Shown here piece by piece: positions 67-52,304 of a stretch of DNA of 64,000 bases. Source of the DNA: Octopus sinensis (lineage: Eukaryota); the NCBI RefSeq assembly GCF_006345805.1, contig NC_043001.1, positions 117,986,001 through 118,050,000 of the forward strand. The letters run 5' to 3'. The position numbers and the translations under genes are program-made. Position 1 is the stretch's first letter. Every line of letters starts with the position of its first letter. Under the pieces are notes generated by a model that did not search any database, was not told the origin of the DNA, and was given only the letters and a program-made list of their open reading frames with translations.

Positions 67-714
67 ATGTTCATCACACTGTCTCCAAAAGAGATCCGCT
101 ACACTCAAGATTCTATTTCTTCATGTTTTCAAAATGGAAACGAAATACAAGATCTTATTTCAGACATTATCAAGGGTCAAACCACAATTAATGAAATTCG
201 AACAATCAGAGTTTTCCTTAAAGATGAGAAACATTATAGTGTAGACAATAGGAGACTTTACGTGTTCAAAGAAGTGCAACGGTTAAAGCAGCCATATTTG
301 AGGATAGGAGTCAAATTAATAGACGAAGCTGATTTTGACGCAGCTAAGTTCACTACAACGAGCGATGGTTTATATATAAAAGTAAGAAAGGGACCTACAA
401 ATAGAGTACCTAAACATACAACTGCGCCGACAAATATATATTCGTTTAGCGCAAGTCCCAGAAGAACTACATATGATGAAAGTCCCAGAACTGCATATGA
501 AGCAAGTCCCAGACCTACTTATGAAGCAAGTCCCAGACCTACTTATGAAGCAAGTACCAGAACTACTTATGCAACTGGATCTAGTTTCTCCAGTAGCTAT
601 GGAACGGATAACGTTTACAGACTGGACACTCCAAGAGTTCCGAATATTATACGTAAAGAACCCACAAAGCCAACACCAGAGAAATCCGATGATTCTTGGT
701 GTGTAATTCTTTAA
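67..714 (+). CDS. Copy A: uncharacterised 215-aa protein; putative ParB/Srx-like domain + 4x octapeptide repeat + CaaX (WCVIL)
   Basis: Uninterrupted ORF. The track start at 46 is TTG; the first ATG is at 67. Motifs PKEIRYTQDSI, YSVDNRRLYVF, KFTTT..G..IKVR; ends CVIL-stop; AATAAA at 960-965. The domain assignment rests on motif recognition only. Confidence 0.8.
   Translation: MFITLSPKEIRYTQDSISSCFQNGNEIQDLISDIIKGQTTINEIRTIRVFLKDEKHYSVDNRRLYVFKEVQRLKQPYLRIGVKLIDEADFDAAKFTTTSDGLYIKVRKGPTNRVPKHTTAPTNIYSFSASPRRTTYDESPRTAYEASPRPTYEASPRPTYEASTRTTYATGSSFSSSYGTDNVYRLDTPRVPNIIRKEPTKPTPEKSDDSWCVIL
466..561 (+). repeat. 24-bp coding minisatellite, 4 units (copy A)
   Basis: TTYDESPR TAYEASPR PTYEASPR PTYEASTR. 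Confidence 0.9.
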
Positions 715-1800
715 ACAGTCATCCTGATGCTACTGACTCAAAGGAATATCAATTTTAATTTTCTTGAATTTTGCTTGTTTTATTTGAGACGAAAATGGAA
801 CTTAAATTTAAATCTCTGATACTACGGATGTGAAGTAAGAACCTTCTAGTTTTCTTTACCTTTTTGGTAAAATTCTACCACCCCAACCCCACATTTTACA
901 ACAAAAAAAAAAGATTTAAAGTTACCGGTTTTCTTTTTACCTTTCATATTTTTACGGATAATAAAATACATGCGAAGCAAAATATTCAACAAAACACTTC
1001 ACAATGTATACAAATGGTATAAATATTGAAAAAGAAAAAAGAAAATATTAGAAATATTGGGATTTTAATTAAGTTTTCTTTATATATTCAAATTAATCAT
1101 TTAAACGATTTTACTGGTAAATTATGACAAACGGAATAAAATTTGAACATTATCGAAGGGAAGTCGTTCTATCCTCAGACACAGGAAAGCAACAATTGAC
1201 CTTTCATTTATTCTTTTGTCAAGTTATATAAAACATTATATATATATATATATATATATATATAATGTGTGTGTGTATGTATGTATGTATAAAAGGGACC
1301 GAGGTAAAAGAATACGCACACCACCCGTTTACGAAGTAACAAGGACCCTAGCCCCTAACACTGGTTGTACGTGTCCTTTACTTTCGCCATAAAAGGTTTT
1401 TGTTTCATTTAAACAATTTTAAAACGTCTAAATTATAAGTTTATCATTTAATAAACCTCCCCACACGCGGCAAAAGAGTTTCAACCTCTCTGTTACCAAC
1501 GAAAACGATAAGCTTCCTCGATATTATTATTGTGTAACCAGAAGCTTGTTACTTTTAAACGTTCTGGGGGGAAAAAAAACTTCCTTTTCTACACACCCAT
1601 ATTTTTCTTTTTCTTTTTGTTAATGTGTACATCTTAACCTTATGGGGTCATTCATATCGATTCATTTCAAGATGACAACGCCGTTACATAGCAATACTGA
1701 TTACACCCACAAAGGAATCTAAAAAAAAAGATTTTTTGCTTCGAAGTACCCTGAACTCCCAATATGCCACAAATCTCCCTTTTTTTATTTTCAGAAACAA

Positions 1801-2300
1801 AATTTCTTTATAATCCGAAAGCATGCCCTTTGAAAGGTATTTCTATAAAATTTCATTGAAAAAAAACCATTTTCCTAAAAGTTATGTGGGAAAAACTCGG
1901 ATTTCGTGAATTTTCCGAAGTCCTTTCCCCATCCCCGTTGGAAAAGATTTTCCTCACAAATTTCTTTATAATCGTAATCTATGCTGTTTGAAAGGTATTT
2001 CTATAAAATTTCATTGAAGAAACCCCATTTTCCTAAAAGTTACGAGGGAAAAACTCGGATCTTATAAATTTTCCAAAGTCCTCCCCCCACCCTCCCGTTT
2101 CTTTGCGCGCATTTTTTTTTTTTTTCATATTCGTTTCCTGCCCATTGCTTTACATCCATCCCAGTACTTTTTTTTTTGGTGTGTGTGTGTGGAGGGGGTG
2201 ATTTTCATTTCCGGATCAAGATTAACCCGAATTTCTTTATAATCGTAATCTATGCCATTTGAAAGGGACCTATATAAAATTTCACGGATTTGTTCAGTTT
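1801..2300 (+). repeat. Degenerate satellite-like array (units of roughly 120-160 bp)
   Basis: Recurrent AATTTCTTTATAATC..GAAAGGTATTTCTATAAAATTTCATTGAAAAAA..CCATTTTCCTAAAAGTTA..GGAAAAACTCGGAT. Other blocks at about 2900-3000, 15060-15365 and 15600-15700 (+). Confidence 0.8.
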
Positions 2301-3594
2301 GGATCACTGATTTTTTTTATTCACTTTCTTTTTCAAACTTCGTATTTTTCTCACCCAGAACACGATTTACTTTGAACATTTTTGACAAAATTTGGTATTT
2401 TAGAAGTTATTTTGTGTTAAGGTTGTATTTGGGTACTTTCAACCCATCAACGACATGTATTCAGATTAAGAAAGCTACTGCTGCTTGCGATAGTAGTCGA
2501 GGAGGAACAACTTCCGGGTCATCTCTACTAAATGTCACCACTCTGTTCTATGTCCAGCAGCCACCTTTATCCTTTCTAGTCAGCACCGTGCATTCCTTAC
2601 TCTTTCCCTCCCTACTACACTATCAACTAGCAACCAGCCAGCGAACTTGTTACTGCACTGCAGTTACCGTATTTTCAGGTGTATAAGCCGCTATTTTTCT
2701 TTTACCGTCAGGTTTTAATAATGCTATTTTTCATCTAATAAAGACTTTTATATTGACGAAATATGTTTGTTGTTGATTATAGTAAGATAAAATCGTGACA
2801 ATGACAATACATCTCATAGTTAGAAAATAAGGCATTTTGAAACTACATACACGTCAAGGATCTGTTCAGTTTGGCTCAAACACTGAAGAGATCCAATTTC
2901 ATTGCAAGATATCCATTTTCCTAAAGGTTATGAGGGGGAAAATTCGGATCGTGTGAATTTTCCGAAAGTCCTATTCCCGCCCCCGATTCGTTACTGCAAA
3001 TTTTTATTTTCATATTTCATTATTGCACATTTTTTTTTACACCTGTTACACTCGTTTTGATTTCTGTTTTGGTAACCAGTAGTAAAAGTAACATTAACCG
3101 ATAGAATACCAGGTTTCAAAAAATGAGCCCTGGGATCGATTCATTCGACTAAAAATTCTCCAAGGCGGTACCCCAGCATAGCCACAGGCTAATGACTCAA
3201 ACAAGATACAAGCAAAATATACTGAAATGATCTTAACGAAAGAAGGTGCAGTTACTCGGCTGATTAAAACTAGCAGCCAAATCTTATCCTACCTTTTCAC
3301 TTTAACATTTCTGAGAAAATATTACTTTCGTTTTTATTCCAAGAAGTGCTTACTTTAGATACAATGACCAGCAAAACTTTCCAAGTACAAACAGAGATTT
3401 CGTAGAAAAGTAATCTATGGAGCTGTTATAATAAATAGCAGTATTTCACAGGAGATAAATCATTAACTGCCTGATGCGTAATGAACTCAATTACACTGAC
3501 TTATTCCCCTTGTTCACAAGAATTTTAACTTTCATTTTGATTTCCGAGAAACAGAATCTTCACAAGTATTACTTTGTCATTACATACGTTCACT

Positions 3595-4338
3595 ATGTTC
3601 ATCACACTGTCTCCAAAAGAGATCCGCTACACTCAAGATTCTATTTCTTCATGTTTTCAAAATGGAAACGAAATACAAGATCTTATTTCAGACATTATCA
3701 AGGGTCAAACCACAATTAATGAAATTCGAACAATCAGAGTTTTCCTTAAACATGAGAAATATTATAGTGTAGACAATAGGAGACTTTACGTGTTCAAAGA
3801 AGTGCAACGGTTAAAGCAGCCAAATTTGAGGATAAGAGTCAAATTAATTCACCAAGTTGATTCTCACGTAGATAAGTTCACTACAACGACCGATGGTTTA
3901 CGTATAAAAGTAAGAAAGGGACTTGCAAATAGAGTACCTAAACATACAACTGCGCCGACAAATATATATTCGTTTAGCGCAAGTCCCAGAAGAACTACAT
4001 ATGAAGAAAGTCCCAGAACTACATACGAAGAAAGTCCCAGAACTGCATATGAAGAAAGTCCCAGAACTACATATGAAGAAAGTCCCAGAACTGCATATGA
4101 AGAAAGTCCCAGAACTGCATATGAAGAAAGTCCCAGAACTACATATGAAGAAAGTCCCAGACCTACTTATGAGGCAAGTACCAGAACTACTGATGCAACT
4201 GGATCTAGTTTCTCCAGTAGATATGGAACGGATAACGTTTACAGACTGGAGACTCCAATAGTTCCGAATATTATACTTGAAGAACCCACAAAGCCAACAC
4301 CAGAGAAATCCGATGATCGTTGTTGTGTAATTCTTTAA
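3595..4338 (+). CDS. Copy B: diverged 247-aa paralogue; 8x octapeptide repeat; ends RCCVIL
   Basis: Intact ORF paralogous to A and C; ATG at 3595; 23 amino-acid differences outside the repeat block; AATAAA at 4585-4590. Confidence 0.8.
   Translation: MFITLSPKEIRYTQDSISSCFQNGNEIQDLISDIIKGQTTINEIRTIRVFLKHEKYYSVDNRRLYVFKEVQRLKQPNLRIRVKLIHQVDSHVDKFTTTTDGLRIKVRKGLANRVPKHTTAPTNIYSFSASPRRTTYEESPRTTYEESPRTAYEESPRTTYEESPRTAYEESPRTAYEESPRTTYEESPRPTYEASTRTTDATGSSFSSRYGTDNVYRLETPIVPNIILEEPTKPTPEKSDDRCCVIL
3994..4185 (+). repeat. 24-bp coding minisatellite, 8 units (copy B)
   Basis: (T[T/A]YEESPR)x7 + PTYEASTR; accounts for the 32-aa length difference from A and C. Confidence 0.9.
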
Positions 4339-4902
4339 ACAGTCATCCTGATGCTACTGACTCAAAGGAATATCAATTTTAATTTTCTTGAATTTTGCTT
4401 GTTTTATTTGAGACGAAAATGGAACTTAAATTTAAATCTCTGATACTACGGATGTGAAGTAAGAACCTTCTAGTTTTCTTTACCTTTTTGGCAAAATTCT
4501 ACCACCTCAACCCCACATTTTACAACAAAAAAAAAAAGATTTAAAGTTACCGGTTTTCTTTTTACCTTTCATATTTTTACGGATAATAAAATACATGCGA
4601 AGCAAAATATTCAACAAAACACTTCACAATGTATACAAATGGTATAAATAATGAAAAAGAACAAAAAATATATTAGAAATATTGGGATTTTAATTAAGTT
4701 TTCTTTATATATTCAAATTAATTACATACACACACAAATTATATATATATAATGTTTTATATAACTTGAGAAAAGAATAAATGAAAGGTGATATACCAAT
4801 TGTTGCTTTCCTGTGTCTGAGGATAGAACGATTTCCCTTCGATAATGTTCAAATTTAATTCCGTTTGTCATAATTTACCAGTAAAATCGTTTAAATGATT
4901 AA

Positions 4903-6856
4903 TCTCTTATTATAAAAGGCAGATTTTATCTGCCTCCCTTTGTATCTTATAGAAATCTACAATATAGGATTTCTTCAATTACAATTTACCTAGCATTTTT
5001 AAGAGTAGAATGCATCGGGTCGTGCCAGGTCCGCTTTTTAAAATGTCAACCCCAATTAAGCAAAATTTACAGAAAACTCACATTGTGGTGTATGAGTCAA
5101 ATGCTTCTCTTAGTGTGGGATACAGCACACACAAACGCACACACACAGTGTGCAACGAATAAAGTGAAAGTAATTCACTTTCTGTAGTGAGTGACTCTTT
5201 CATTCTGCCTCCCACTTCCTCTTTACACACATAGACACGCAAATATATAAATAAAATTGTAACCTAACGTGCGTGTGTGTGAGTGTGTGTGTGGTGTGTG
5301 TGAGGGTGTGTGTGCGTGAGTGTGTGACAGGAAAGTTTTTTAGGACGAATATAAGACCTATATCCAAGTAGCAGAAAGATCGCCCAAAAGTGTATATAGA
5401 TATTTAAATGTATTTATATATTCATCTATACACAGATGTTTGTATAATGTGTGTGTATATATTTCCACAGAGGTAACCTTTCACTCCATACAAAGTTTTT
5501 TAGGACGAATATAAGATCTAAAGTATATACAAGTAGCAGAAAGATCGCCCAAAAGTGTATGTAGATATTTAAATGTATTTATATATTCATCTATACACAG
5601 ATGTATGTATAATGTGTGTGTATATATTTCTATAGACGTAACCATTCACTCCGCACAAAGTTTTTTAGAACGAAAATAAGATCTAAAGTTATCTCTAAGT
5701 AGCACAAAGATCGCCCAAAAGTGTATATAGATATATAAATGTATTTATATATTTATCTATGCACACATGTATGTATAACGTGTGTGTATATATTTCCATA
5801 GAGGTAACCATTCACTCCATACAAAGTTTTTTAGGACGAAAATAAGATCTAAAGTTATCTCTAAGAAACAGAAAGATCGCCCAAAAGTGTATATAGATAT
5901 TTAAATGTATTTATATATTCATCTATACACACATGTATGTATAATGTGCGTGTATATATTTCCATAGAGGTAACCATTCAATCCATACAAAGTTTTTTAG
6001 GACGAAAATATTTATATATAAAAGAAAGGTTGTGTGTCTGTCTACTCCGATTTAGATTCCTAACTACTCCCACATTTTGCGATGCAGTTTAACCAAAACC
6101 GGGTATCTTATAGTCGTGATTCAAATCGAGCCCTTCTGGGTATTAGCGCGCGTCTACGATGAGTCTATGATTTTACAAATAATTTACCATCATTTTTTTC
6201 CATTTTAATGCATATTTTTTTAATAAAGGGAAGTAACTCTCAAACTTCACACCAATATGCGTGCTCATATGCGACGTAATATCACATCAGCAGCATTTCC
6301 TCACACCCTCCTTGCACTTGGCGAAGGCAAAATACCAGGGGATGAAAATGGTAATATTGCCATCGATTCCATTTGTACCATTGTTAAGACGCCTTCTGAT
6401 CTCAGAGATGCAGTGTTCCCAGATCTACAAGCTAATTATCAGAATATGGATTGGATTGGCAAAAAGGCTATACTGGCCCCGAGGAATAAAACTGTTCACC
6501 ATATTAATGATGAAATGCTAAAACTCATTCCTGGGGAAGTCTATGTATATCAGTCTATCGATACAACTCCTGACCCAGAGGACGTCACATCAACTATCCA
6601 ATAGAGGTACTCAATTCCTTTGAGCACCCCGGACTACCACCACACTTTCTCAAACTTAAAGTTGGTGCCCCTATAATGCTCATCAGAAATTTGGTTCCCC
6701 CAAAACAATGCAATGGCACACATTTGATCGTTAAGTCCTTATCTCCCACCGTAAACTTATATCAATATTTGCCTGAATAATCATCATAATTCAGTGCAAT
6801 CATTAACAGTACTTTCAAGCAATTCAGCCCCGAGCAACGCCGGGCAATTCTGCTAG
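4903..6856 (+). mobile_element. Non-autonomous Helitron with a PIF1-type helicase remnant
   Basis: 5' A|TCTCTTATTATAAAAGG; 3' hairpin CCCGAGCAACGCCGGG then CTAG|T at 6853-6856. Remnant at about 6250-6755 reads ...AILAPRNKTVHHIN...[21 protein letters not shown]...CNGT with frame disruptions. Absent from the paralogous flanks of A and C. Confidence 0.85.
5332..6010 (+). repeat. About 165-bp tandem repeat, about 4 units, inside the Helitron
   Basis: AAAGTTTTTTAGGACGAA recurs at about 5332, 5492, 5657, 5823 and 5989. Confidence 0.9.
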
Positions 6857-7904
6857 TGTATGTATAAAAGGGACCGAGGTAAAAGAATACGCTCACCACC
6901 CGTTTTCGGCGTAACAAGGACCCTAGCCCCTAACACTGGTTGTACGTGTCCTTTACTTTCGCCATAAAAGGTTTTTGTTTCATTTAAACAATTTTAAAAC
7001 GTCTAAATTATAAGTTTATCATTTAATAAACCTCCCCACACGCGGCAAAATGTTTCAATCTCTCTGTTACCAACGAAAACGATAAGCTTCCTCGATATTA
7101 TTATTGTGTAACCAGAAGCTTGTTACTTTTAAACGTTCAGGGGGAAAAAAAACTTCCTTTTCTACACACCCATATTTTTCTTTTTCTTTTTGTTAATGTG
7201 TACATCTTAACCTTATGGGGTCATTCATATCGATTCATTTCAAGATGACAACGCCGTTACATAGCAATACTGATTACACCCACAAAGGAATCTAAAAAAA
7301 AAGATTTTTTGCTTCGAAGTACCCTGAACTCCCAATATGCCACAAATCTCCCTTTTTTTATTTTCAGAAACAAAGGGAGGGTAGTGCTGGGGGAGCTTGG
7401 AATTACTCCCGAAAGTCCCAGGTCCACCACCACATAAACGGCTCCTTTCTACTGAAAATGGAAGATTTGGCTGCTATTTCTAGCACGCGCTGCTACCACG
7501 TAACAGCTATTTGCGATAGCAGCATGTCCTTTATCGCAAATACCTGTTCAGTGGTAGCAGGACGTGCTAGAAATACCAGCCTAATCGGTTCATAACAACG
7601 TTTCACATTGTTTCGCTTTAATTACAACTAGGGAGGGGGAGGGGGGTGATCTGCTGTTCCTGTCATTATTAAAGTGTTGCCTAAAAATGCACCTGGTTTT
7701 TACCCCTTGATTTGCCTTTTCCCACTGGTCAACGGTTTCTGTAGATTGTATTTGTATAATGTCACTTCCTGCTTTTTCTTAAAATACTGCGAAATGTGCT
7801 CCACATACAAAGAAGTTACATTTTAATTCAAACGAATTAACCAGTTCTTGAATCTTTCAGAAAATTAATAAAAGAAAAGTGGTGCGCTTTCGTATGTGAA
7901 AATA

Positions 7905-8570
7905 ATCTTTTGTCACTAAACACTTTCAAACTTCGGACACGGGTGGAAAGGCGTGATTCAACTGAATAAAATGACTGCCGTCGTTTGTCAACAAGAACTT
8001 CCGGCGGTGTATATTTCGTCTGTCACTGTTAATGACAACCCTTAACCACCCTTTCCTTACTGTATTTCTGTTGAGATGCTCTCTGTTTCTTTCAATTACT
8101 TTAAAAAAACAAAGAATTTAGTAAAGTAACTTAGTTATCATTCAGCTGGTTTTAGGAATATAGATTGTGACTAAGGATTGGTGGAAGATTTTAATTCAAA
8201 ACTTATGAAAACAAGACATTTGTACTCAGAGCCACAGCCGGTTTCAGCCGGGTTGGTCACGAAAGGGTTAAAACTAGTACAAACGCACGATATGTCATAA
8301 ATAGCAATTACAAACGAAAAACCCACCGCCAATAGTTTTTGTTGACAAACAACAGCAGTAATTTTATTCAGCTGAATACACGTCATTGATTGGTTGAAAT
8401 TACCGAAATACGAAAACTTTGAGACGTGAAATAACTTCGTAAATAGGTTTTTCACAAAAATGCTAAGAGTAAAAGATATTTCATATGACACATTCTACCA
8501 GTGTCCGAAGTTTGAAACTGTTTAGTTACAAAAGATTATTTTTTAAATCTGTCGGTCAAAAGGTAAAGAT
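7905..8570. mobile_element. Foldback MITE split by a TTAA-flanked piggyBac-like MITE (about 8043-8270); duplicated at about 18580-19245
   Basis: Arms match the element at 11131-11740. The inner element ends GAAAGGGTTAA and matches the family at 53002-53230. Confidence 0.6.
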
Positions 8571-8604
8571 CCGCAACCAGTTGCTCAGACAGCCGGCACA
8601 TACC

Positions 8605-8835
8605 TATTTCTTTACTACCCACAAGGGGCTAAACACAGAGGGGACAAACAAGGACAGACGTAGGTATTAAGTCGATTACATCGACCCCAGTGCGTAACTG
8701 GTACATAATATATCGACCCCGAAAGGATGAAAGGTAAAGTCGACATGGGCGGAATTTGAACTCACAACGTAACGGCAGACGAAATACCGCTAAGCATTTC
8801 GCCCGGCGTGCTAACGGTTCTGCCAGCTCGCCGCC
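8605..8835 (-). mobile_element. tRNA-like SINE with an 18-bp TSD
   Basis: TSD AGACAGCCGGCACATACC at 8587-8604 and 8836-8853; B-box-like GTTCAAATTCC on the minus strand. Confidence 0.85.
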
Positions 8836-9544
8836 AGACAGCCGGCACATACCATTTCGCTAGCCACAAAGGGAGCACAGGATGACAGTCAGCCCAAACC
8901 GTCGCTATGCTGTATCTCTTCTTTCCTCTGTCTGTCTCTCTTATTAAGAAGATGTATGTATATTGTGCTAAGATTCGTTATCAAAAGTTATCCTTACTGA
9001 GAAGAAGCAGTCAAAAGCAACCACCACATACAATCACCAAACATCTCCACTACTTAACACCGTCCAAGTTAACCTGCTTCACCTTTTCAACTGACATGAA
9101 ACACTACGAGGAAAAGCAACCATTTTAATTTAGCCAAAAAAGAGAAAAAATCGATTGCTATGAAAACGCGTAAAATTTGAGGGTTAATAATCTTAAATCT
9201 TTAGTTACAGTTTCTCATTCAAACTACATAATAAGCAGAATTGTCAGATTAAGACAGTGGGGTGTTTTGAGGGAGATTTGGCTGCTGTTTCTACTAGGTC
9301 TAGCTACCATGTAGAAGTCTCCCTTATTGGCTCATACATACATATATGCATAAACTCGAAATAAAATACATAAAGCAACAGGCGTCAAATACAAATGCCG
9401 AGGTTCATGCAGTGTCATGAGCCCAAATATTTCCAACTTCTAGTCTAATGCGAGCCCAGAGCAATCTCTTATCTCTTACACTATTTCAGTATTATGTCTG
9501 TATTGTAATGCGAGATAATACTTTCAGTTTGAAAGAAGTCTGTC

Positions 9545-9583
<39 letters not shown>

Positions 9584-9584
<1 letters not shown>

Positions 9585-10141
9585 CTTATATAAAATCCGT
9601 TCTGTCTGCTTGTGTGTGTGTGTCTTCTCTGATCTCGGGCATCCTCCATCCGATTGCGCTCAAATTTGATATGTAGATACCGACGGTATCAGGGCATGTA
9701 TAAGTCTTGAAACAACTACAAAAATCGATTCCAGGTGAGAATGCGATCAATAAAGCCGTTATTTCCGTCAACCTGTACATAACTGCACCTTCCATTTTTT
9801 TGTTGGTTTTGTACTGCTTAAAGACACGTTTCGTTCCTGCCAAGTTTACTGTTTAAACCGTGTCTGTGTTCTCCCAGTTAAAAGCCTATTCATTACTGGT
9901 ACTTTAAAATCTTTGGTTGCATATTTGTGTGAATAAAATCGTTTTTCTTTGGAATAGAAAAAAGTTTATCGTTATTTCTTCTTTTGCTGGTGTCTCAAAT
10001 TTAGATTAAATCAGTGTTTCCCAAATGTGAGGCCTATGGGACGGACGGACAAGTTTTGAGAATATTTGGTGTCAATGTTTGACAACTCAGCACCGTCCAT
10101 TGGACAGGGGGCGTTTTGCTCGTGTGTGTATGTATATATAT

Positions 10142-10176
<35 letters not shown>

Positions 10177-10992
10177 TCCTTATGCATTCTAAAACCGAGT
10201 TATAGATTTTCACGAATGGGGTATCAAAAGATTCAGTACTATTTCGGTAACAAATTAAGCAGGTATGTTCCATACCATTCTTATAAAAATGATAACTCTG
10301 TCCAAATTGGTGTGCTAAACACAAATTGGTGTTTCTGTAGAGCTTTAAAATTTTCAAGTGAAACAAATGGTATGTGCTGCTCAGGTGGTCAGGTAACATT
10401 GCCAGCACTACCAGCTCCTTCTCAACCACTTATGGATCTTCTAGAAGGCACTTCCATCCAGTCAAAGGATTTTCTGAACAATATCAGGTAATACAACTCT
10501 GCATTTCAAATGACATCGTTTGGTGCATCTAAGAAGATAAACACGAGTTTACGCTGACGTCAAAGTTCAAGGGCAAGTCCATCACCTTATTGGTTCCCTG
10601 TGGCCCAGAAATGAACAACCACAGATCCTCCAAATTTACTTTATGAGTGATGTAGGACAACAAACCCGAAGGAGGTATTAAATTTTCCGATGATGGGTCG
10701 TGTTAGACACAGCGTTGACTGCTGCAAAAGAGAGTATATCCACTGACAGCTTTTCTGTGCGTTCAAAACTCACATGACCCCCATCCCAAATTTTCCATGA
10801 AGGGTTAGGGCCTGAAATACTCCAAACGGATGCATAGCATGTTGCTTTGTCGAATTAGCGCAGCATTTACTCCACAAATGTTTTGTTGTCAATGCTTCAC
10901 TTTCCCATATCACCTCTTTCAACATAATCTGTAATATGTTACATACAAACTATGCCATTTTAATCCCGAGCAACGCCGGGTGCCTCTGCTAG
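9584..10992 (+). mobile_element. Non-autonomous Helitron with a remnant of the N-terminal Rep-helicase region
   Basis: 5' A|TCTTATATAAAATCCG; 3' CCCGAGCAACGCCGGG..CTAG|T. Remnant reads CFCRALKFSSETNGMCCSGGQVTLP...SKDFLNNIR*YNSAFQMTSFG. Confidence 0.85.
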
Positions 10993-11130
10993 TAAACTCA
11001 TATAAGCACATATATCCACATGCATTTATATATTAACGATGTACGCAAATACACGACAGGTAAACATAATACTGAAGTACGCATGAAGTAAACACATAAA
11101 GATAAATATAACAAACAACGCAGAGACAAA

Positions 11131-11740
11131 GCATCTTTACCTTTTGACCGACAGATTAAAAAATATTTTTTTGTAACTAAACACTTTCAAACTTCGGACA
11201 CAGGTAGAATGTGTCATATAAAATATCTTTTACTCTTAGCATTTTTGGGAAAAACTTACATTTACGAAATTATTTCACGTTAAAGTAGTCCTATTTCGGT
11301 AATTTCAACCAATCAATGACGTGTATTCAGCTGAATAAAATTACTGCCATTGTTTGTCAACAAAAACTATCGGCGGTGGGTTTTTCCTTTGTCACTGTTA
11401 TTTGTGACATCGTTCGTGCGTTTGTACTGGTTTTAACTTGAGGGTTTTAAGGTTAGGATTTTAGGGTTGTCATAAATAACAGTGACAAACGAAATATACA
11501 CCGCCGGAAGTTCTTGTTGACAAACAACAGCAGTAATTTTATTCAGCTGAATACACGTCATCGATTGGTTGAAATTACCGAAATAGAACAACTTTAACGT
11601 GAAATAACTTCGTAAATATAAGTTTTTCTCAAAAATACTAAGAGTAAAAGACGTTTTATAAGACACATTCTACCAGTATTCGAAGTTTGAAAGTGTTTGG
11701 TTAAAAAAAAATATTTTTCAAATCTGAGACAAAAGAAACA
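11131..11740. mobile_element. Foldback MITE with inverted arms of about 270 bp
   Basis: 11131-11415 is the approximate reverse complement of 11469-11740. Confidence 0.7.
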
Positions 11741-12099
11741 GTAAGATGATACATGTTGATTTTATTAGGTATTTCCATTTATTTAGAAACCTACAATGAA
11801 CAGGTCAGACGCTAAACTCTAAATTCCACAGGGTACAACCTTAAAGTTAACATCGCTCCGCTGAATTATAGCCGATTTTCAGATTTTTTACTGTGTTTTA
11901 AAAAATGCTTACTTTACGAATGAAAAAAACTAGATCCGAAAAAGGTTTTTAACAAGATCCGATGTATCATGGTGAGAGAAACAAATTCATAAATAAGGTG
12001 TTGAATATAGTTTCACTGTGGGAAAAATGTTAAGGTCAATTTAGCTGTTGCTTTTAGCGCATCACTACAATTGGGATCTTTAAAAAAACTCATACCTTT

Positions 12100-12415
12100 T
12101 AGGAGAATGGGTTTTTTTTTCAATGAAATTTTATAGAAATACCTTTCATACGGCATACATTACGATTATAAAGAAATTTCTGGGGAAAATCTTTTCCAAG
12201 GAGGTGGGGAGAGAACATCGGAAAATTTACAAAATCCGAGTTTTTTCTCATAACTTTCAGGAAAATGGGTCTTTTTTTTTTTTTCAATGAAATTTTATAG
12301 AAATATCTCTGCAACGGCATACATTACGATTATAAAGTAATTTGTGGGGAAAATCTTTTCCGAAGGGTGGGGAGAGGACTTTGGAAAATTCACAAGATGC
12401 AAGTCATTCCCTCAT
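12100..12415 (-). repeat. Same satellite in inverted orientation
   Basis: TTTTTCAATGAAATTTTATAGAAATACCTTTCA is the reverse complement of the unit above; present twice. Confidence 0.8.
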
Positions 12416-12439
12416 AATTGTATATATATATATATATAT

Positions 12440-13603
12440 ATGGGATACCTCGAGAAAATACTATACCGGATGACACTCGAGAAATATGGAAACACCTTCG
12501 CCACCTATATCCATAACAACTGGAAAAGATACCTCGATGACTGTTTCATCATCTGGGACAAAGGCATAGAGAAACTTGAGGAATTTAAAATTCTATTAAA
12601 TGGAATAAATGACAATATACAATTCACGATGGACCACAACGAAAAAGAATTACCATTTTTAGACATCCTCATTAAGAAAACCGGCAACAAAATAGAGACA
12701 GATATCTACTATAAACCGACAGACTCTAAACAGTACCTACCCTTTGATTCATGCCACCCACGACACACTAGAATGAATGTCCCTTTTTGTTTAGCTAGAA
12801 GGATTTGCACCATAATATCAGACACAAACACCCGACACACACGTCTCCAGGAACTTAGAACCACACTCACAAATAGAAACTATCCACAGCCCCTAATAGA
12901 CAGTGCAATCCAACGGGTACTTAAATTAAGTATAGAAGACCTGAGACAAACAAAACCAAAAAAGAAAGAACAATTAAAAACCCTTCCCTACATCTCTACA
13001 CACAACCCACTCAACAATGAGGCCTTCAACACCATACTACAAAGCACAGCCCTACTAAAGGGAGACCCAAAGATGAACCGGATCCTCGAAACACACACCA
13101 TCATTAAAAGTAAACGGCAACCAAAATCCTTGAAAAGGATTTTAACCCAAGCTACACTGCACTCAACATCAACCACAAAACCAGCAGTTAGAAAATGTGG
13201 AAGGCCCAACTGCGGAATCTGTGTCATCTTGAAAGAAGGATCAGAATTTATACTGGAACAAGGCCACCAGTTCACCATTAGAACAAACTTCACCTGCGCA
13301 TCAGAAAACTTAATTTACGTCATAACATGCGCAGGCTGCAATAGGCAGTATATAGGCCATACAAAAAATAGCTTACGTAACAGGATGGCGGTGCATAAAT
13401 CACAAATTAGAAACCCTGATTACCGCAAAATACCGGTCAGCGGACACATAGATAGATGTGCTGGAAATGTAAATCCGAAATTTACAACTAACCCGCTCTA
13501 TAAATTCAGTGACAACGCAACCTTCACACAACGCCAAAATAAAGAACTATATTTCATAAAAAAATTTAGACCAAGTTTAAACACCCTGGGCCAGGAATAC
13601 TAA
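12440..13603 (+). CDS. 5'-truncated Penelope-like element ORF: RT C-terminal half, thumb and GIY-YIG endonuclease
   Basis: WKRYLDDCFIIW, LPFLDILI, IYYKPTDSKQYL..SCHP; Zn-knuckle-like CGRPNCGIC; NLIYVITC..C..QYIGHT..LRNRM..H. It begins abruptly after a (TA)n tract, so the track's N-terminus from 12344 is read-through of satellite and microsatellite. Confidence 0.9.
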   Translation: MGYLEKILYRMTLEKYGNTFATYIHNNWKRYLDDCFIIWDKGIEKLEEFKILLNGINDNIQFTMDHNEKELPFLDILIKKTGNKIETDIYYKPTDSKQYLPFDSCHPRHTRMNVPFCLARRICTIISDTNTRHTRLQELRTTLTNRNYPQPLIDSAIQRVLKLSIEDLRQTKPKKKEQLKTLPYISTHNPLNNEAFNTILQSTALLKGDPKMNRILETHTIIKSKRQPKSLKRILTQATLHSTSTTKPAVRKCGRPNCGICVILKEGSEFILEQGHQFTIRTNFTCASENLIYVITCAGCNRQYIGHTKNSLRNRMAVHKSQIRNPDYRKIPVSGHIDRCAGNVNPKFTTNPLYKFSDNATFTQRQNKELYFIKKFRPSLNTLGQEY

Positions 13604-13771
13604 AACAAAAGATAAGTCCTCCGAAAAGGAGAACCAAATTTCACCACGGCCGCTACTTCAAACAGACACTCACTCTGACGGAAATATGCCTTAGTAAAAA
13701 AGGAAAGAAATTCTTTCGTGCAAATCTCACCCTGATACATACGATACAGCTAAGGGTCAGACCCGACTCTG

Positions 13772-14235
13772 ATTGGTCAACAAGTTGATGACGTCTAGCT
13801 CTGCTAGAATGGACAGGATACAAACAGGGGACAGTCATTAGTCAGAATATTGATGACGTCCTTTTCTGCTTGAATAGTCACCTAACAAGTACAGACAGGT
13901 GGCAGATCTAATGTAGCTATAAGTCGTGATTGGGCAGAATCTGGATGACGTCCCGCTCTGCTTGACTAACGAAGCGACTGGTCAAAACAGGAAACAAACA
14001 AGAGGCAGATATAATGCAGCGATTGGTCAAAATAATGATGACGTCCCGTTCTACTTGACTAACGAAGCGACTGGTCAAAACAGGAAACAAACAAGAGGGA
14101 GTTATAATGCAGCGATTGGTCAAAATAATGATGACGTCCCGTTCTACTTGATTAAAGCCACCTAACGAAATGATTGGTCAAAACATTGATGACGTCACGC
14201 TACGCTAGATTGACCACCTAACAGGCATTATAAAA
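13772..14235 (+). promoter_or_regulatory. Six ATTGG-N12-TGACGT composite sites followed by TATAAAA
   Basis: ATTGG/TGACGT pairs at 13772/13789, 13837 (ATTAG)/13854, 13929/13946, 14022/14039, 14115/14132 and 14173/14190 (full TGACGTCA); TATAAAA at 14229-14235. Confidence 0.7.
13961..14146 (+). repeat. 93-bp tandem duplication within the Penelope promoter region
   Basis: CTTGACTAACGAAGCGACTGGTC at 13961 and 14054. Confidence 0.9.
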
Positions 14236-14672
14236 CCGAGCATTTCACAAAAACTCACTAGAACCACCCAGCGAACTTCCACCATGGGTCATCACAATTG
14301 CTTAAGGTAAAAATGAATTCCTCGCTCTTTCGGAACATCAATCTTCTGTATTGACCGCTTTCCACCACTTTGATCTGTTTTTTGTATTGAATACGTATCG
14401 CCACCGTGGGCCACTGCATCGAACACTTTGAACATATACTTCAAACTATATATCAACTATACATGAACTATATATCAACTATACATGAACTCTAAGATGT
14501 CTGACTCCGTTGTGTATTATAAATGAATTTCTTGTGTTTGACGGCATGAGCTGTCTCTTTTTATATATAACTTTTTTTGATAAAGTTCATTTCAGGAACT
14601 GAAACATGTTATAATGTATATATAAAAATTAAAAATTGTATAATACAGCAGCATTTTCGAACTTCATTTTTT

Positions 14673-14719
<47 letters not shown>

Positions 14720-14823
14720 ATATATATACATATATATAAGTATGTGTGTGCGTATCTATCTATCTCTCTCTCTCTCTCGTTGCTGTGTTTTTTTCTGTGT
14801 TTTCTTGTTTGGATTAACTCTCA

Positions 14824-14857
<34 letters not shown>

Positions 14858-16130
14858 TATATATATATTATATATATATATAATATATATATATATAAAG
14901 AGAGAGAGAGAGAGAGAGAAAGTAATAAAGAGTGAATGAGAATAATTGAAAATGAAACAAAATTGAAGCCAAATAACTAAAAATTATAGAAAGTGGGTAG
15001 AAATAAACACTACGTAGTGTAGTAGTACTACGCTAGGGTATGTGTAGAAAGTTGAACGTGATTTCGGAATATAATGAGGAAAAATTCGGATCTTGGGGAT
15101 TTTCCGAAAGTTCGCTACCAACATCAAGATTTTCCCTACAACTTACTTTATAGTTGTAATGAATGCCGTTTCAATAGTATTTCTATAAAATTTCATTGAA
15201 AAAAACCCATTTTCCTAAAACTTGTGAGGGAAAAACTCGGATTTTGTGAATTTTCCGAAGTTCTCTCCCCACCGAGTTGGATAAGATTTTCCACACAAAT
15301 TTCTTTATAATCCCAAAGCATGCCGTTTGAAAGGTATTTCTATAAAATTTCATTGAAAAAACCCCAGTTACCGTATTTTCAGGTGTATAAGCCGCTATTT
15401 TTCTTTTACCGTCAGGTTTTAATAATGCTATTTTTCATCTAATAAAGACTTTTATATTGACGAAATATGTTTGTTGTTGATTATAGTAAGATAAAATCGT
15501 GACAATGACAATACATCTCATAGTTAGAAAATAAGGCATTTTGAAACTACATACACGTCAAAGATCTGTTCAGTTTGGCTCAAACACTGAAGAGATCCAA
15601 TTTCATTGCAAGATATCCATTTTCCTAAAGGTTATGAGGGGGAAAATTCGGATCGTGTGAATTTTCCGAAAGTCCTATTCTCGCCCCCGATTCGTTACTG
15701 CAAATTTTTATTTTCATATTTCATTATTGCACATTTTTTTTTACACCTGTTACACTCGTTTTGATTTCTGTTTTGGTAACCAGTAGTAAAAGTAACGTTA
15801 ACCGATAGAATACCAGGTTTCAAAAAATGAGCCCTGGGATCGATTCATTCGACTAAAAATTCTCCAAGGCGGTACCCCAGCATAGCCACAGGCTAATGAC
15901 TCAAACAAGATACAAGCAAAATATACTGAAATGATCTTAACGAAAGAAGGTGCAGTTACTCGGCTGATTAAAACTAGCAGCCAAATCTTATCCTACCTTT
16001 TCACTTTAACATTTCTGAGAAAATATTACTTTCGTTTTTATTTCCAAGAAGTGCTTACTTTAGATACTATGACCAGCAAAACTTTCCAAGTACAAACAGA
16101 GATTTCGTAGGAAAGTAATCTATGGAGCTG

Positions 16131-16170
16131 TTATAATAAATAGCAGTATTTCACAGGAGATAAATCATTA
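16131..16170 (+). promoter_or_regulatory. Possible TATA/Inr-like core promoter of copy C (equivalent at about 3426-3465 for copy B)
   Basis: TATAATAAATAG about 35 nt before TCATT and about 170 nt upstream of the ATG; weak evidence in an AT-rich background. Confidence 0.25.
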
Positions 16171-16299
16171 ACTGCCTGATGCGTAATGAACTCAATTACA
16201 CTGACTTATTCCCCTTGTTCACAAGAATTTTTACTTTCATTTTGATTTCCGAGAAACAGAATCTTCACAAGTATTACTTTGTCATTACATACGTTCACT

Positions 16300-16947
16300 A
16301 TGTTCATCACACTGTCTCCAAAAGAGATCCGCTACACTCAAGATTCTATTTCTTCATGTTTTCAAAATGGAAACGAAATACAAGATCTTATTTCAGACAT
16401 TATCAAGGGTCAAACCACAATTAATGAAATTCGAACAATCAGAGTTTTCCTTAAAGATGAGAAACATTATAGTGTAGACAATAGGAGACTTTACGTGTTC
16501 AAAGAAGTGCAACGGTTAAAGCAGCCATATTTGAGGATAGGAGTCAAATTAATAGACGAAGCTGATTTTGACGCAGCTAAGTTCACTACAACGAGCGATG
16601 GTTTATATATAAAAGTAAGAAAGGGACCTACAAATAGAGTACCTAAACATACAACTGCGCCGACAAATATATATTCGTTTAGCGCAAGTCCCAGAAGAAC
16701 TACATATGATGAAAGTCCCAGAACTGCATATGAAGCAAGTCCCAGACCTACTTATGAAGCAAGTCCCAGACCTACTTATGAAGCAAGTACCAGAACTACT
16801 TATGCAACTGGATCTAGTTTCTCCAGTAGCTATGGAACGGATAACGTTTACAGACTGGACACTCCAAGAGTTCCGAATATTATACGTAAAGAACCCACAA
16901 AGCCAACACCAGAGAAATCCGATGATTCTTGGTGTGTAATTCTTTAA
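16300..16947 (+). CDS. Copy C: 215-aa protein, coding sequence identical to copy A
   Basis: Same translation as A in the ORF track, and I saw no nucleotide difference in the CDS; AATAAA at 17194-17199. Confidence 0.8.
   Translation: MFITLSPKEIRYTQDSISSCFQNGNEIQDLISDIIKGQTTINEIRTIRVFLKDEKHYSVDNRRLYVFKEVQRLKQPYLRIGVKLIDEADFDAAKFTTTSDGLYIKVRKGPTNRVPKHTTAPTNIYSFSASPRRTTYDESPRTAYEASPRPTYEASPRPTYEASTRTTYATGSSFSSSYGTDNVYRLDTPRVPNIIRKEPTKPTPEKSDDSWCVIL
16699..16794 (+). repeat. 24-bp coding minisatellite, 4 units (copy C)
   Basis: Identical to the block in copy A. Confidence 0.9.
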
Positions 16948-17468
16948 ACAGTCATCCTGATGCTACTGACTCAAAGGAATATCAATTTTAATTTTCTTGA
17001 ATTTTGCTTGTTTTATTTGAGACGAAAATGGAACTTAAATTTAAATCTCTGATACCACGGATGTGAAGTAAGAACCTTCTAGTTTTCTTTACCTTTTTGG
17101 TAAAATTCTACCACCTCAACCCCACATTTTACAACAAAAAAAAAAAGATTTAAAGTTACCGGTTTTCTTTTTACCTTTCATATTTTTACGGATAATAAAA
17201 TACATGCGAAGCAAAATATTCAACAAAACACTTCACAATGTATACAAATGGTATAAATATTGAAAAAGAAAAAAGAAAATATTAGAAATATTGGGATTTT
17301 AATTAAGTTTTCTTTATATATTCAAATTAATCATTTAAACGATTTTACTGGTAAATTATGACAAACGGAATAAAATTTGAACATTATCGAAGGGAAGTCG
17401 TTCTATCCTCAGACACAGGAAAGCAACAATTGACCTTTCATTTATTCTTTTGTCAAGTTATATAAAAC

Positions 17469-17516
<48 letters not shown>

Positions 17517-19278
17517 GTGTGTGTATGTATGTATGTATAAAAGGGACCGAGGTAAAAGAATACGCACACCACCCGTTTACGAAGTAACAAGGACCCTAGC
17601 CCCTAACACTGGTTGTACGTGTCCTTTACTTTCGCCATAAAAGGTTTTTGTTTCATTTAAACAATTTTAAAACGTCTAAATTATAAGTTTATCATTTAAT
17701 AAACCTCCCCACACGCGGCAAAAGAGTTTCAACCTCTCTGTTACCAACGAAAACGATAAGCTTCCTCGATATTATTATTGTGTAACCAGAAGCTTGTTAC
17801 TTTTAAACGTTCTGGGGGGAAAAAAAACTTCCTTTTCTACACACCCATATTTTTCTTTTTCTTTTTGTTAATGTGTACATCTTAACCTTATGGGGTCATT
17901 CATATCGATTCATTTCAAGATGACAACGCCGTTACATAGCAATACTGATTACACCCACAAAGGAATCTAAAAAAAAAGATTTTTTGCGTCGAAGTACCCT
18001 GAACTCCCAATATGCCACAAATCTCCCTTTTTTTATTTTCAGAAACAAAGGGAGGGTAGTGCTGGGGGAGCTTGGAATTACTCCCGAAAGTCCCAGGTCC
18101 ACCACCACATAAACGGCTCCTTTCTACTGAAAATGGAAGATTTGGCTGCTATTTCTAGCACGCGCTGCTACCACGTAACAGCTATTTGCGATAGCAGCAT
18201 GTCCTTTATCGCAAATACCTGTTCAGTGGTAGCAGGACGTGCTAGAAATACCAGCCTAATCGGTTCATAACAACGTTTCACATTGTTTCGCTTTAATTAC
18301 AACTAGGGAGGGGGAGGGGGGTGATCTGCTGTTCCTGTCATTATTAAAGTGTTGCCTAAAAATGCACCTGGTTTTTACCCCTTGATTTGCCTTTTCCCAC
18401 TGGTCAACGGTTTCTGTAGATTGTATTTGTATAATGTCACTTCCTGCTTTTTCTTAAAATACTGCGAAATGTGCTCCACATACAAAGAAGTTACATTTTA
18501 ATTCAAACGAATTAACCAGTTCTTGAATCTTTCAGAAAATTAATAAAAGAAAAGTGGTGCGCTTTCGTATGTGAAAATAATCTTTTGTCACTAAACACTT
18601 TCAAACTTCGGACACGGGTGGAAAGGCGTGATTCAACTGAATAAAATGACTGCCGTCGTTTGTCAACAAGAACTTCCGGCGGTGTATATTTCGTCTGTCA
18701 CTGTTAATGACAACCCTTAACCACCCTTTCCTTACTGTATTTCTGTTGAGATGCTCTCTGTTTCTTTCAATTACTTTAAAAAAACAAAGAATTTAGTAAA
18801 GTAACTTAGTTATCATTCAGCTGGTTTTAGGAATATAGATTGTGACTAAGGATTGGTGGAAGATTTTAATTCAAAACTTATGAAAACAAGACATTTGTAC
18901 TCAGAGCCACAGCCGGTTTCAGCCGGGTTGGTCACGAAAGGGTTAAAACTAGTACAAACGCACGATATGTCATAAATAGCAATTACAAACGAAAAACCCA
19001 CCGCCATAGTTTTTGTTGACAAACAACAGCAGTAATTTTATTCAGCTGAATACACGTCATTGATTGGTTGAAATTACCGAAATACGAAAACTTTGAGACG
19101 TGAAATAACTTCGTAAATAGGTTTTTCACAAAAATGCTAAGAGTAAAAGATATTTCATATGACACATTCTACCAGTGTCCGAAGTTTGAAACTGTTTAGT
19201 TACAAAAGATTATTTTTTAAATCTGTCGGTCAAAAGGTAAAGATCCGCAACCAGTTGCTCAGACAGCCGGCACATACC

Positions 19279-19508
19279 TATTTCTTTACTACCCACAAGG
19301 GGCTAAACACAGAGGGGACAAACAAGGACAGACGTAGGTATTAAGTCGATTACATCGACCCCAGTGCGTAACTGGTACATAATATATCGACCCCGAAAGG
19401 ATGAAGGTAAAGTCGACATGGGCGGAATTTGAACTCACAACGTAACGGCAGACGAAATACCGCTAAGCATTTCGCCCGGCGTGCTAACGGTTCTGCCAGC
19501 TCGCCGCC
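19279..19508 (-). mobile_element. Same SINE insertion in the copy C flank
   Basis: Same TSD and same position in the duplicated segment. Confidence 0.85.
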
Positions 19509-44600: not shown

Positions 44601-45247
44601 ACCCTAGCGGTTGCGGGAACCTGTGGAAGAGGTAGACCCAGGAAAACCTGGAATTTTTGGTCTCACCGAGGAAATGATTAGAGACCGAGACCTTTGGAAG
44701 TATGCTGTGCGTGAGAAGACCCAGCAGGACAAATGAGACCACAACCCGTGGCCTCTACCTGGGATGTAGCCAGTCCACTTATGCATACCTTTCCTTCTTG
44801 GGACACAAAACTCTACTTGCGAAGACCTGTTGAGGCAAGTGAAAATGAAAATCAAAATCGATCAACATCAATGGAAATTGTAGCTGTGATACAAGAGAAC
44901 CGTCCGAACGTGGCCATTGCCAATACCACCCTGACGGGCCTCTGTGCCGGTGGCATGTAAAAATTACCATCCGTGGCCGTTGCCAGGCTCGCCTGGCCTC
45001 CGTGCCGGTGGCACGTAAAAAGCACCGTCCGATCATGGCCGTTTGCCAGCCTTGTCAGGCACCTGTGCCGGTGGCATGTAAAAAGCACCCGCTACACTCT
45101 CGGAGTGGTTGGCGTTAGGAAGAGCATCCAGCCGTAGAAACATTGTCAAATCAGACTGGGCCTGGTGCAGCCTTCTGGCTTCCCAGACCCTAGTTGAACC
45201 ATCCAACCCATGCTAACATGGAGAACGGACGTTAAACGATGATGATG
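41659..45247 (+). mobile_element. Near-full-length RTE-clade LINE (APE endonuclease + RT + Cys-rich insert), disrupted
   Basis: VGTLKGR..DICCIQEVRWRG, AGDFNG, KGDALD..NYRGIKLL, QFGFVPGKSTTDAIF, FVDMEKAFDRVP, GVHQGSVLSPLLF, ELLYADD, CSIC..C..C..H..C; ATATG at both ends; (GAT)n tail; frameshifts and stops. Confidence 0.9.
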
Positions 45248-48398: not shown

Positions 48399-48683
<285 letters not shown>

Positions 48684-50883: not shown

Positions 50884-50959
50884 CTTTTTCAGGAAGTTGA
50901 ACTAAAAATAGTCTTTTGTGTTCTTTGGGTTTTGTTATGTGAGCTGGTACATAAGGATA
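50884..50959 (-). CDS. NUDT21: NUDT21/CPSF5 internal exon, 76 nt
   Basis: tttttag|YPYVPAHITKPKEHKRLFLVQLPEK|gtaagt; phase-compatible with both neighbouring exons. Confidence 0.95.
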
Positions 50960-51251
50960 CTAAAAACAGAAAAAATTAAACAAAATGTATCCTTCGTGGA
51001 TATTTCACAATATAAAGTTCAGGCTAACAATATTCTGTTTGTCAAAAACCTAAGATCAGAATTACAGCAATTAATTTCTTCTTAAATAAAAGCATTTATT
51101 ATTTCTTTAAAATAGCTACTTGATGGCTGGTCTCTTTTTTTCACTAATACAAACCACTACTAACAAGTTACTGTTTAGCCTCAAGTCAGGCCTGATTGTG
51201 CAGACTTTACAAAAAGGTTTCTAGCTGTAGCCATCCAATCTTTTTGTATAT

Positions 51252-52139: not shown

Positions 52140-52304
<165 letters not shown>

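Follow-up and report, generated by a model that had tools for sequence, protein, structure and literature searches.

What might an octopus use a small protein for, when its head resembles the tip of a bacterial toxin and its tail ends in a predicted lipid-attachment signal? The question is raised by a stretch of 64,000 nucleotides (the window) of chromosome CM016863.1 of the Octopus sinensis assembly GCA_006345805.1, starting near position 117,986,001 and identical to that assembly at all 14,338 bases available for comparison, in which we find three intact single-exon open reading frames (ORFs) of one family on the forward strand. We refer to them as copies A, B and C. Their N-terminal head has the features of Tox-ParBL1, which is a divergent branch of the ParB/sulfiredoxin fold and the toxic C-terminal tip of bacterial RHS/HINT toxins. 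The reading that we favor, and to which we give roughly even chances, is that these are three recently duplicated intronless Tox-ParBL1 genes, coding for a geranylgeranyl-tethered enzyme that depends on nucleoside triphosphate (NTP) and acts in conflict or immunity.

Gene anatomy and the predicted fold of the head

The coordinates of the three genes, counted from the first ATG, and of their parts are as follows.

67-714, forward strand: copy A, complete coding sequence, 215 amino acids, with ParBL1 head, repeat linker and CVIL
3595-4338, forward strand: copy B, complete coding sequence, 247 amino acids, ending CCVIL with an extra Cys adjoining the CaaX Cys
16300-16947, forward strand: copy C, complete coding sequence, 215 amino acids, same sequence as A
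67-396, forward strand: copy A ParBL1 (ParB/sulfiredoxin-fold) domain, residues 1-110, from AlphaFold2, Foldseek and conservation
3595-3924, forward strand: copy B ParBL1 domain, with 16 nonsynonymous and 1 synonymous differences from A
463-571, forward strand: copy A 24-nt tandem repeat, 4.5 copies, SPRTTYE[EA], predicted disordered linker
3991-4190, forward strand: copy B 24-nt tandem repeat, 8.3 copies
16696-16804, forward strand: copy C 24-nt tandem repeat, 4.5 copies
700-711, forward strand: copy A CaaX box CVIL (TGT GTA ATT CTT), followed by TAA
4324-4335, forward strand: copy B CaaX box CVIL
16933-16944, forward strand: copy C CaaX box CVIL
960-965, forward strand: AATAAA polyadenylation-like signal about 246 nt past the stop of A, with equivalents at 4585 and 17194

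Each copy has an N-terminal domain of 110 amino acids, then the SPRTTYE[EA] repeat encoded by the 24-nt units, and then CVIL. The motifs IRYTQDSI, YSVDNRRLYVF and KFTT..G..IKVR are common to all three, as is the terminal CVIL with its TAA stop codon. The coding sequences of A and C are identical at 648 of 648 nucleotides. Each ATG has an A at position −3 and an in-frame stop codon 57 nt upstream. These are not chance reading frames, since a profile of the domain matches 978 cluster representatives at E ≤ 1e-10.

Scans of the octopus proteins against Pfam, NCBIfam, PADLOC and PHROGs gave nothing meaningful, and among PDB sequences phmmer returned chance matches at most and the profile none at E ≤ 10. 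We therefore turn to structure, where an AlphaFold2 model built from a 150-sequence alignment places residues 1-110 at a predicted local distance difference test score (pLDDT) of about 98, with the remainder disordered. The order of secondary structure in the model is beta, beta, alpha, beta-hairpin, alpha, beta. Residues 112-215 form a repeat-rich tail lacking secondary structure, with mean pLDDT of 47-71 per 10-residue block. The top 30 Foldseek matches in the PDB comprise ParB (including ParB-CTP complexes), Noc, plant and human sulfiredoxin, SbnI, SerK, KorB and Atu1540, and nearly all matches in the viral structure library BFVD are ParB/sulfiredoxin proteins. On the evidence of this model the head is a ParB/sulfiredoxin fold.

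The most conserved motif of the family is DNRRL. In the model D60-N61-R62-R63-L64 lies at the N-terminus of a helix (residues 61-73), directly after the beta-hairpin. This is presumably the site occupied by GERR in ParB and GCHR in sulfiredoxin, a correspondence that we take from the general layout of those structures and not from a residue-level superposition. Over 176 domains conservation is 98% for N61, 97% for R62, 96% for R63, 100% for L64, 91% for Q14 and 84% for S16. In copy A the family-conserved residues include T13, Q14, D15, S16, D60, N61, R62, R63, L64, T96, T97, G101 and R107. Nineteen family-conserved residues are kept in A, B and C, namely P7, I10, R11, Q14, D15, S16, I17, F21, G24, I47, V49, N61, R62, R63, L64, T96, T97, G101 and R107.

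A first-pass annotation, made from the letters of the sequence, had described three intact paralogues with a domain of about 110 amino acids, the motifs given above, a variable repeat and a terminal CVIL. Our reading of the ORFs and repeats agrees with this throughout, with the coordinates correct. Its proposal of a ParB/sulfiredoxin fold is borne out by the domain model and the structural matches. It had also equated DNRRL with the arginine motif of that fold. The position at the start of the helix and the exceptional conservation both speak for this, while the positional equivalence itself remains our assumption.

Toxin-tip relatives and homologues with predicted membrane anchors

Where does such a domain come from? 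Tox-ParBL1 was predicted in silico by Zhang, de Souza, Anantharaman, Iyer and Aravind in 2012 (PMC3482391), with metazoans and other eukaryotes among the listed hosts, and its eukaryotic members were read as acquired from bacterial toxin systems. It is defined there by a ParB fold, a conserved N-terminal Ser/Thr that classical ParB lacks, an [NT][RT][RT] motif and its occurrence at polymorphic-toxin tips. The [NT][RT][RT] motif, mostly RR, is the equivalent of DGHHR in Tox-ParB (PMC3482391). The N-terminal regions of the bacterial proteins are RHS, HINT or filamentous, and their partners are Imm-SUKH or Imm44 (PMC3482391). By this published definition of motif and context the octopus domain fits Tox-ParBL1, the comparison being with the definition and not with the type protein, Neisseria gonorrhoeae NGK_2271. 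As the domain was already recorded in metazoans, the suggestion in the first-pass annotation that the system is undescribed does not stand. We found no later papers using the name Tox-ParBL1.

A word-indexed search with a single sequence gave two relatives only, and an exhaustive profile search over 1.84 billion cluster representatives was needed to reveal the family. This gave 3,368 representatives at E ≤ 1e-3, including the 978 mentioned above. The octopus members are from Octopus sinensis, O. vulgaris and O. bimaculoides, the bivalve members from Mercenaria, Ruditapes, Mya, Tegillarca, Saccostrea and Sinanodonta, and other animal members from the chiton Liolophura, the annelid Dimorphilus and the tunicates Ciona and Styela. 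Members are also present in dinoflagellate transcriptomes. All named animal members are labeled 'uncharacterized' or 'hypothetical', so that a link to unannotated invertebrate families, made at first pass, is well founded in molluscs, an annelid and tunicates. No contig matched exactly when we looked up A, B or P0154, the homologue from O. bimaculoides.

The same annotation had associated the domain with the tips of bacterial polymorphic toxins, and this is where the bacterial relatives are found. A search seeded with an eight-sequence alignment gave 55 bacterial loci, with tblastn E values down to 2e-21, whose members are 36-45% identical to the octopus head across the full domain. In 23 bacterial reading frames the domain stops 0-5 amino acids from the stop codon (14 at one locus). 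Eight of the 23 frames exceed 1,400 amino acids and run off the locus, and both of the large ones scanned contain RHS repeats. PT-HINT and RHS domains are detected in family members. The bacterial domain is thus the last ~100 residues of RHS/HINT polymorphic toxins.

Immediately downstream of the toxin, in about 20 of the 23 bacterial loci, there is a small gene of the DUF7660 family (PF24693), identified as follows in locus coordinates.

about 4220-4600: DUF7660 gene with the motif WEN..L..FLEA..W..DMDGYY, in loci L002, L005-L009, L012, L015, L018, L020 and L022
about 4220-4600: DUF7660 gene with the same motif, in loci L024, L030, L036, L038, L040, L042, L043, L047, L048 and L053

Toxin genes and their immunity genes are usually arranged in this way, one directly after the other, and DUF7660 is probably the cognate immunity family of the bacterial RHS-ParBL1 toxins. 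It does not appear in the 2012 list of partners (Imm-SUKH, Imm44), and none of the papers that we searched mentions it. Four of the downstream genes were scanned and contained no SUKH or Imm44. This recurrent partner is a candidate inhibitor for biochemical work.

In A, B and C the sequence TGT GTA ATT CTT TAA places Cys-aliphatic-aliphatic-Leu directly before the stop codon. Among 147 other top representatives of the family, 15 end in a canonical CaaX box, and 13 of these have Leu in the last position. If about 2% of proteins carry CaaX, 15 of 147 has a binomial p = 3e-7. The endings found in relatives are CVIL, CTIL, CIIL and CNIL, and, where the source of a CaaX-tailed protein is named, it is Ciona, Styela, Sinanodonta, Liolophura or Octopus. 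Six further representatives have poly-Cys tails and four a single hydrophobic (transmembrane) helix. C-terminal membrane anchors therefore recur in relatives from tunicates, bivalves, a chiton and octopus, and the CaaL tail pointed out at first pass is a feature of homologues in several phyla. A CaaX box ending in Leu is a substrate of GGTase-I, as shown experimentally for the CTIL of human OAS1 p46 (PMC8357416, PMC7612834), and the octopus CVIL tails are predicted to be geranylgeranylated likewise. In copy B and many relatives the CaaX Cys is adjoined by at least one further Cys, a candidate site for a second lipid.

Some distant relatives end in DDSWC[VT]IL. These are on mRNA-sized single-gene contigs of 1-2 kb (L057, which is SRR2014689, and L058-L065), one of which starts with a T7 promoter tail, a sign of an RNA-derived library. 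In these proteins the residues just before the CaaX box, an acidic-Ser-Trp stretch, are conserved, a hint of some recognition motif in addition to prenylation. Three proteins from metagenome and other contigs (P0157, P0158 and P0159) form a subfamily with FTHSRIRP...FSLNNRRLYVLK motifs, in which a C-terminal helical extension replaces the lipid anchor.

There is also a second octopus subfamily of ParBL1-CaaX proteins. Its O. sinensis copy, LOC118763415 (L066 10001-10959), is the nearest other relative along the chromosome, 545 kb upstream of the window genes, and in the assembly it is out of frame within the repeats. In O. vulgaris the second subfamily is an intact tandem pair of single-exon genes (L067 10001-11326 and 17445-18284) of 441 and 279 amino acids. 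The members of the pair differ only in repeat number, and both end CCVIL.

Duplication, divergence and rival explanations

How have the octopus copies diverged? Between A and B there are 32 aligned coding differences, 29 nonsynonymous and 3 synonymous. The ratio of nonsynonymous to synonymous rates (dN/dS, Nei-Gojobori) is 2.8 overall and 4.45 in the head. The flanks differ at 12 positions in 1,318 bp (0.9%). Nonsynonymous divergence is 5.8%, six times that of the flanks (Fisher p = 7.5e-9), and synonymous divergence is 2.1%, no different from the flanks. None of the 19 family-conserved residues is hit by a change; the changes fall on columns that are variable in the family (Mann-Whitney p = 1.5e-4). 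Eight of the 32 lie within 27 nt, in codons 85-93.

319-345, forward strand: hypervariable patch, codons 85-93, IDEADFDAA in A and C and IHQVDSHVD in B, directly before KFTT

This pattern suggests that A and B are diverging under positive selection, in keeping with the description of the family as diversifying in the first-pass annotation. Over longer times the octopus genes are constrained. The ratio dN/dS is ~0.55 when the two octopus subfamilies are compared, and 0.13 when second-subfamily orthologues from O. vulgaris and O. sinensis are.

An ordinary cellular regulator is one alternative to a conflict role. The proteins would then be a membrane-tethered nucleotide-dependent switch, or a small-molecule or protein kinase, and the divergence of A and B would reflect constraint relaxed once the gene had duplicated. 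Characterized proteins of the ParB/sulfiredoxin fold do include switches and kinases (Noc, SerK, SbnI and sulfiredoxin). One of the top structural matches, the ParB-like nucleoid occlusion protein Noc, binds membranes in a CTP-dependent manner. The long-term dN/dS below 1 would also suit a regulator, as would the second octopus subfamily, which has no recent divergence in the domain. Yet relaxation alone cannot exceed the neutral rate, and the nonsynonymous rate of A and B is well above that of the flanks, so relaxed constraint is disfavored. Moreover the nearest relatives in sequence are toxin tips with likely immunity genes, not housekeeping enzymes, and lineage-specific tandem expansion with repeat-length polymorphism is typical of conflict genes. 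We consider a regulator unlikely, though the most probable of the rivals.

The history of the copies can be read from a comparison of the window with itself. Positions 1-1801 match 16234-18049 at 98.95% identity, 2661-4099 match 15365-16804 at 97.4%, and 6857-9509 match 17530-20169 at 96.8%.

2661-4722, forward strand: duplicated unit around B, with 934 bp upstream, the coding sequence and 384 bp downstream; it matches 15365-17331, with flanks 0.9% diverged
15365-20169, forward strand: duplicated block around C, collinear with 1-1801 plus 6857-9509 (copy A)

The A locus has an additional segment with copy B and its 934-bp upstream region, bounded by a 520-bp direct repeat (1282-1801 and 6857-7374). 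A nested tandem duplication flanked by such a repeat fits unequal crossing-over and not transposition. We see no further copies elsewhere in the window, nor in the 10 kb that precede it. A ~160-bp repeat is found at the edges of the duplicated blocks (1800-2089, 12112-12417 and 15126-15366) and may have mediated unequal exchanges. A separate 166-bp satellite of 4.1 copies lies at 5332-6010.

Copies A and C are identical in coding sequence and 99.6% identical in the near flanks, yet identity falls to 96.8% in the distal block (6857-9509 against 17530-20169). The drop points either to gene conversion around the gene or to an assembly duplication that is partly artefactual. Could the ORFs then be decaying or artefactual, that is, neutrally drifting young duplicates, with A and C uncollapsed haplotypes and no protein made? 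The identity of A and C is what would be expected, no gene model has untranslated regions or is specific to one copy, and an intact reading frame at 6% divergence is weak evidence of constraint. But every copy retains the 19 family-conserved residues, which the changes avoid, and the coding sequence has changed faster than the flanks, the opposite of what drift would give. O. vulgaris and O. bimaculoides have orthologues and paralogues that share this architecture. In addition the distal block is too divergent for alleles, and the window contains no runs of N that would mark gaps. Decay or artefact is therefore improbable as an explanation of the ORFs.

A selfish toxin-antidote element would have its ParBL1 toxin drive its own inheritance, with the antidote nearby. 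The pairing of the bacterial domain with a neutralizing gene, and the tandem duplication and fast evolution in octopus, are in line with this idea. The duplicated unit has no conserved second ORF, however; neither the overlapping 81-amino acid ORF at 3474-3719 nor the 144-amino acid ORF at 2252-2686 matches any family, and nothing like DUF7660 is found in the window. Drive elements, moreover, are rarely conserved between phyla as this architecture is, and we regard this explanation as very improbable.

That the ORFs are passengers or components of a transposon (by Helitron capture or Penelope-like carriage, for example) and were copied by transposition is the least probable explanation, and we reject it on context: retroelement sequences and the ~160-bp repeats do lie nearby, but the duplicated unit holds only the ParBL1 ORF and no transposase or reverse transcriptase, there are just three local copies in 74 kb and not many dispersed ones, with the next relative 545 kb away, the duplication has the marks of unequal crossing-over, and the family consists of host genes in many animals. 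The first-pass annotation had named membership of a known transposon as one finding that would overturn its view, and no such membership is seen.

Other features of the window lie around and beyond the cluster. A 419-amino acid ORF at 12344-13603 (forward strand), between B and C, has a GIY-YIG endonuclease domain and a YLDD reverse-transcriptase-like motif, and is probably a Penelope-like retroelement. At 41705-44681 (forward strand) is a remnant of a retrotransposon of the long interspersed nuclear element (LINE) type, with endonuclease/exonuclease/phosphatase, RVT_1 and PHD-finger segments in three frames. Helitron remnants were considered for the ORFs at 6257-6604 and 10066-10491, which have no Pfam support, and we do not claim them. 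Minus-strand exons similar to CPSF5/NUDT21 (NUDIX_2) lie at 48552-48683, 50885-51049 and 52206-52298, as found with an approximate probe sequence. Residues 127-182 of that probe are matched twice, with overlap, which suggests an exon duplication. An annotated minus-strand NUDIX_2 gene model spans the ParBL1 cluster, which would then be intronic.

Several points weigh against the conflict enzyme that we propose. A and C may be an assembly duplication instead of two loci. The sole NCBI model over the window copies, LOC115211823 (230 amino acids), is a chimera that runs from the start of A to the stop of B (67-4338). Its 'intron' lies between two 24-nt repeat arrays and fuses the head of A to the tail of B, and the model is apparently an annotation artefact. 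Exact-protein look-ups of A/C and of B in the gene index returned no record and hence no transcript support. The window contains no DUF7660-like sequence and no partner or inhibitor gene. The A/B dN/dS above 1 rests on 32 differences, and the synonymous deficit alone has p = 0.055; the eight clustered changes could be a single complex event. The variable patch is placed relative to the nucleotide pocket by the order of secondary structure and not by coordinates. Finally, a nuclease or other phosphoester chemistry would fit equally well.

Proposed mechanism and comparison with known systems

How might the parts work together? We infer that the ParBL1 head, with all its family-conserved residues intact, would bind NTP through D-N-R-R at the start of helix 2, as the putative counterpart of GERR in ParB, GCHR in sulfiredoxin and GNHR in ToxB. 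The bound NTP might be hydrolyzed, or might serve in phosphotransfer or phosphoester cleavage. The disordered spacer, rich in Ser, Thr, Pro and Tyr, would be a flexible leash of variable length. CVIL would be geranylgeranylated by GGTase-I, and in the CCVIL copies the neighboring Cys may be palmitoylated, so that the lipid anchor would keep the head close to membranes on their cytosolic side. The amino acid changes between A and B appear to concentrate in a surface patch adjoining KFTT, likely beside the pocket. A conflict role is favored by toxin ancestry, tandem expansion, length polymorphism and adaptive change of the patch taken together. This suggests that the octopus copies act in defense or conflict, most likely as host effectors that face a changing partner, inhibitor or target.

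A more tentative extension, which we hold to be possible but rather doubtful, is that molluscs and tunicates have domesticated the ParBL1 warhead into lipid-anchored innate-immune effectors. If so, the geranylgeranyl tail and leash would station an NTP-consuming or nucleic-acid-attacking head on the endomembranes that harbor intracellular pathogens or viral replication organelles. Evolution of the hypervariable patch beside the active site would then serve to escape pathogen inhibitors resembling bacterial immunity proteins. Should our reading be right, the anchored toxin-derived head offers a tractable entry to the chemistry of ParBL1, and to the reuse of toxin domains by invertebrates as membrane-stationed effectors. 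The domain family has been known since 2012. The recurrent lipid-anchored architecture in animals of several phyla and the signature of selection in octopus appear to be new.

The ParB-CTPase fold is under active study, and the Pfam family PF02195 (ParB_N) is blind to ParBL1, including its expanded, unannotated animal families. A survey of the fold published in 2025 relied on PF02195 for its searches and concluded that eukaryotes are represented mainly by sulfiredoxin. It would have missed ParBL1 because PF02195 does not detect it. PF02195 has no match in the octopus proteins and one in 150 relatives (E = 0.0048). A canonical ParB/Noc CTPase clamp can be rejected on this ground, and because the helix-turn-helix DNA-binding and C-terminal dimerization domains are lacking and the tail is predicted to be disordered.

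Sulfiredoxin is the well-known eukaryotic enzyme of the ParB/sulfiredoxin fold, an ATP-dependent phosphotransferase. Like the octopus head it is a single-domain fold of ~100 amino acids, with a template modeling score (TM) of 0.58 when normalized to the Arabidopsis protein. Membership of the sulfiredoxin family was nevertheless rejected. DNRR replaces GGCHR, the catalytic Cys is lacking, the sequences do not match, and architecture and evolutionary origin differ. A likeness in architecture is provided by human OAS1 p46, where a nucleotide-using head is placed on endomembranes by a geranylgeranylated CaaL box, CTIL (PMC8357416, PMC7612834). This is a functional analogy only, as the fold and chemistry of OAS1 p46 are unrelated to those of the octopus proteins.

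The only experimentally characterized ParB-fold toxin that we found in the literature is ToxB, a tip of CdiA that binds and hydrolyzes ATP through a GNHR motif (bioRxiv 10.64898/2026.05.05.722872). The R108A variant has no detectable ATP hydrolysis and far weaker ATP binding, the immunity protein blocks the pocket, and ToxB is toxic in plant cells too (bioRxiv 10.64898/2026.05.05.722872). ToxB and the octopus head share a ParB-fold domain free of the DNA-binding part, with a phosphate motif containing an essential Arg in what we infer to be the same position (R63 in octopus). Yet ToxB was found via PF02195, which does not match the octopus domain, and it belongs to the branch detectable by that family and not to ParBL1. 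The octopus motifs (DNRR, TQDS and KFTT) and the immunity family of the bacterial relatives also differ from those of ToxB.

The Tox-ParBL1 toxins themselves offer the best comparison in sequence. They share with the octopus head the ParB-like fold, the N-terminal Ser/Thr (T13 and S16 in the TQDS of octopus) and the N-R-R motif. In the toxins the domain is the tip of a secreted giant, whereas in octopus it is N-terminal in a short, putatively cytosolic protein that lacks trafficking and pre-toxin domains, has no immunity gene beside its own, and to which a repeat linker and a CaaX box have been added.

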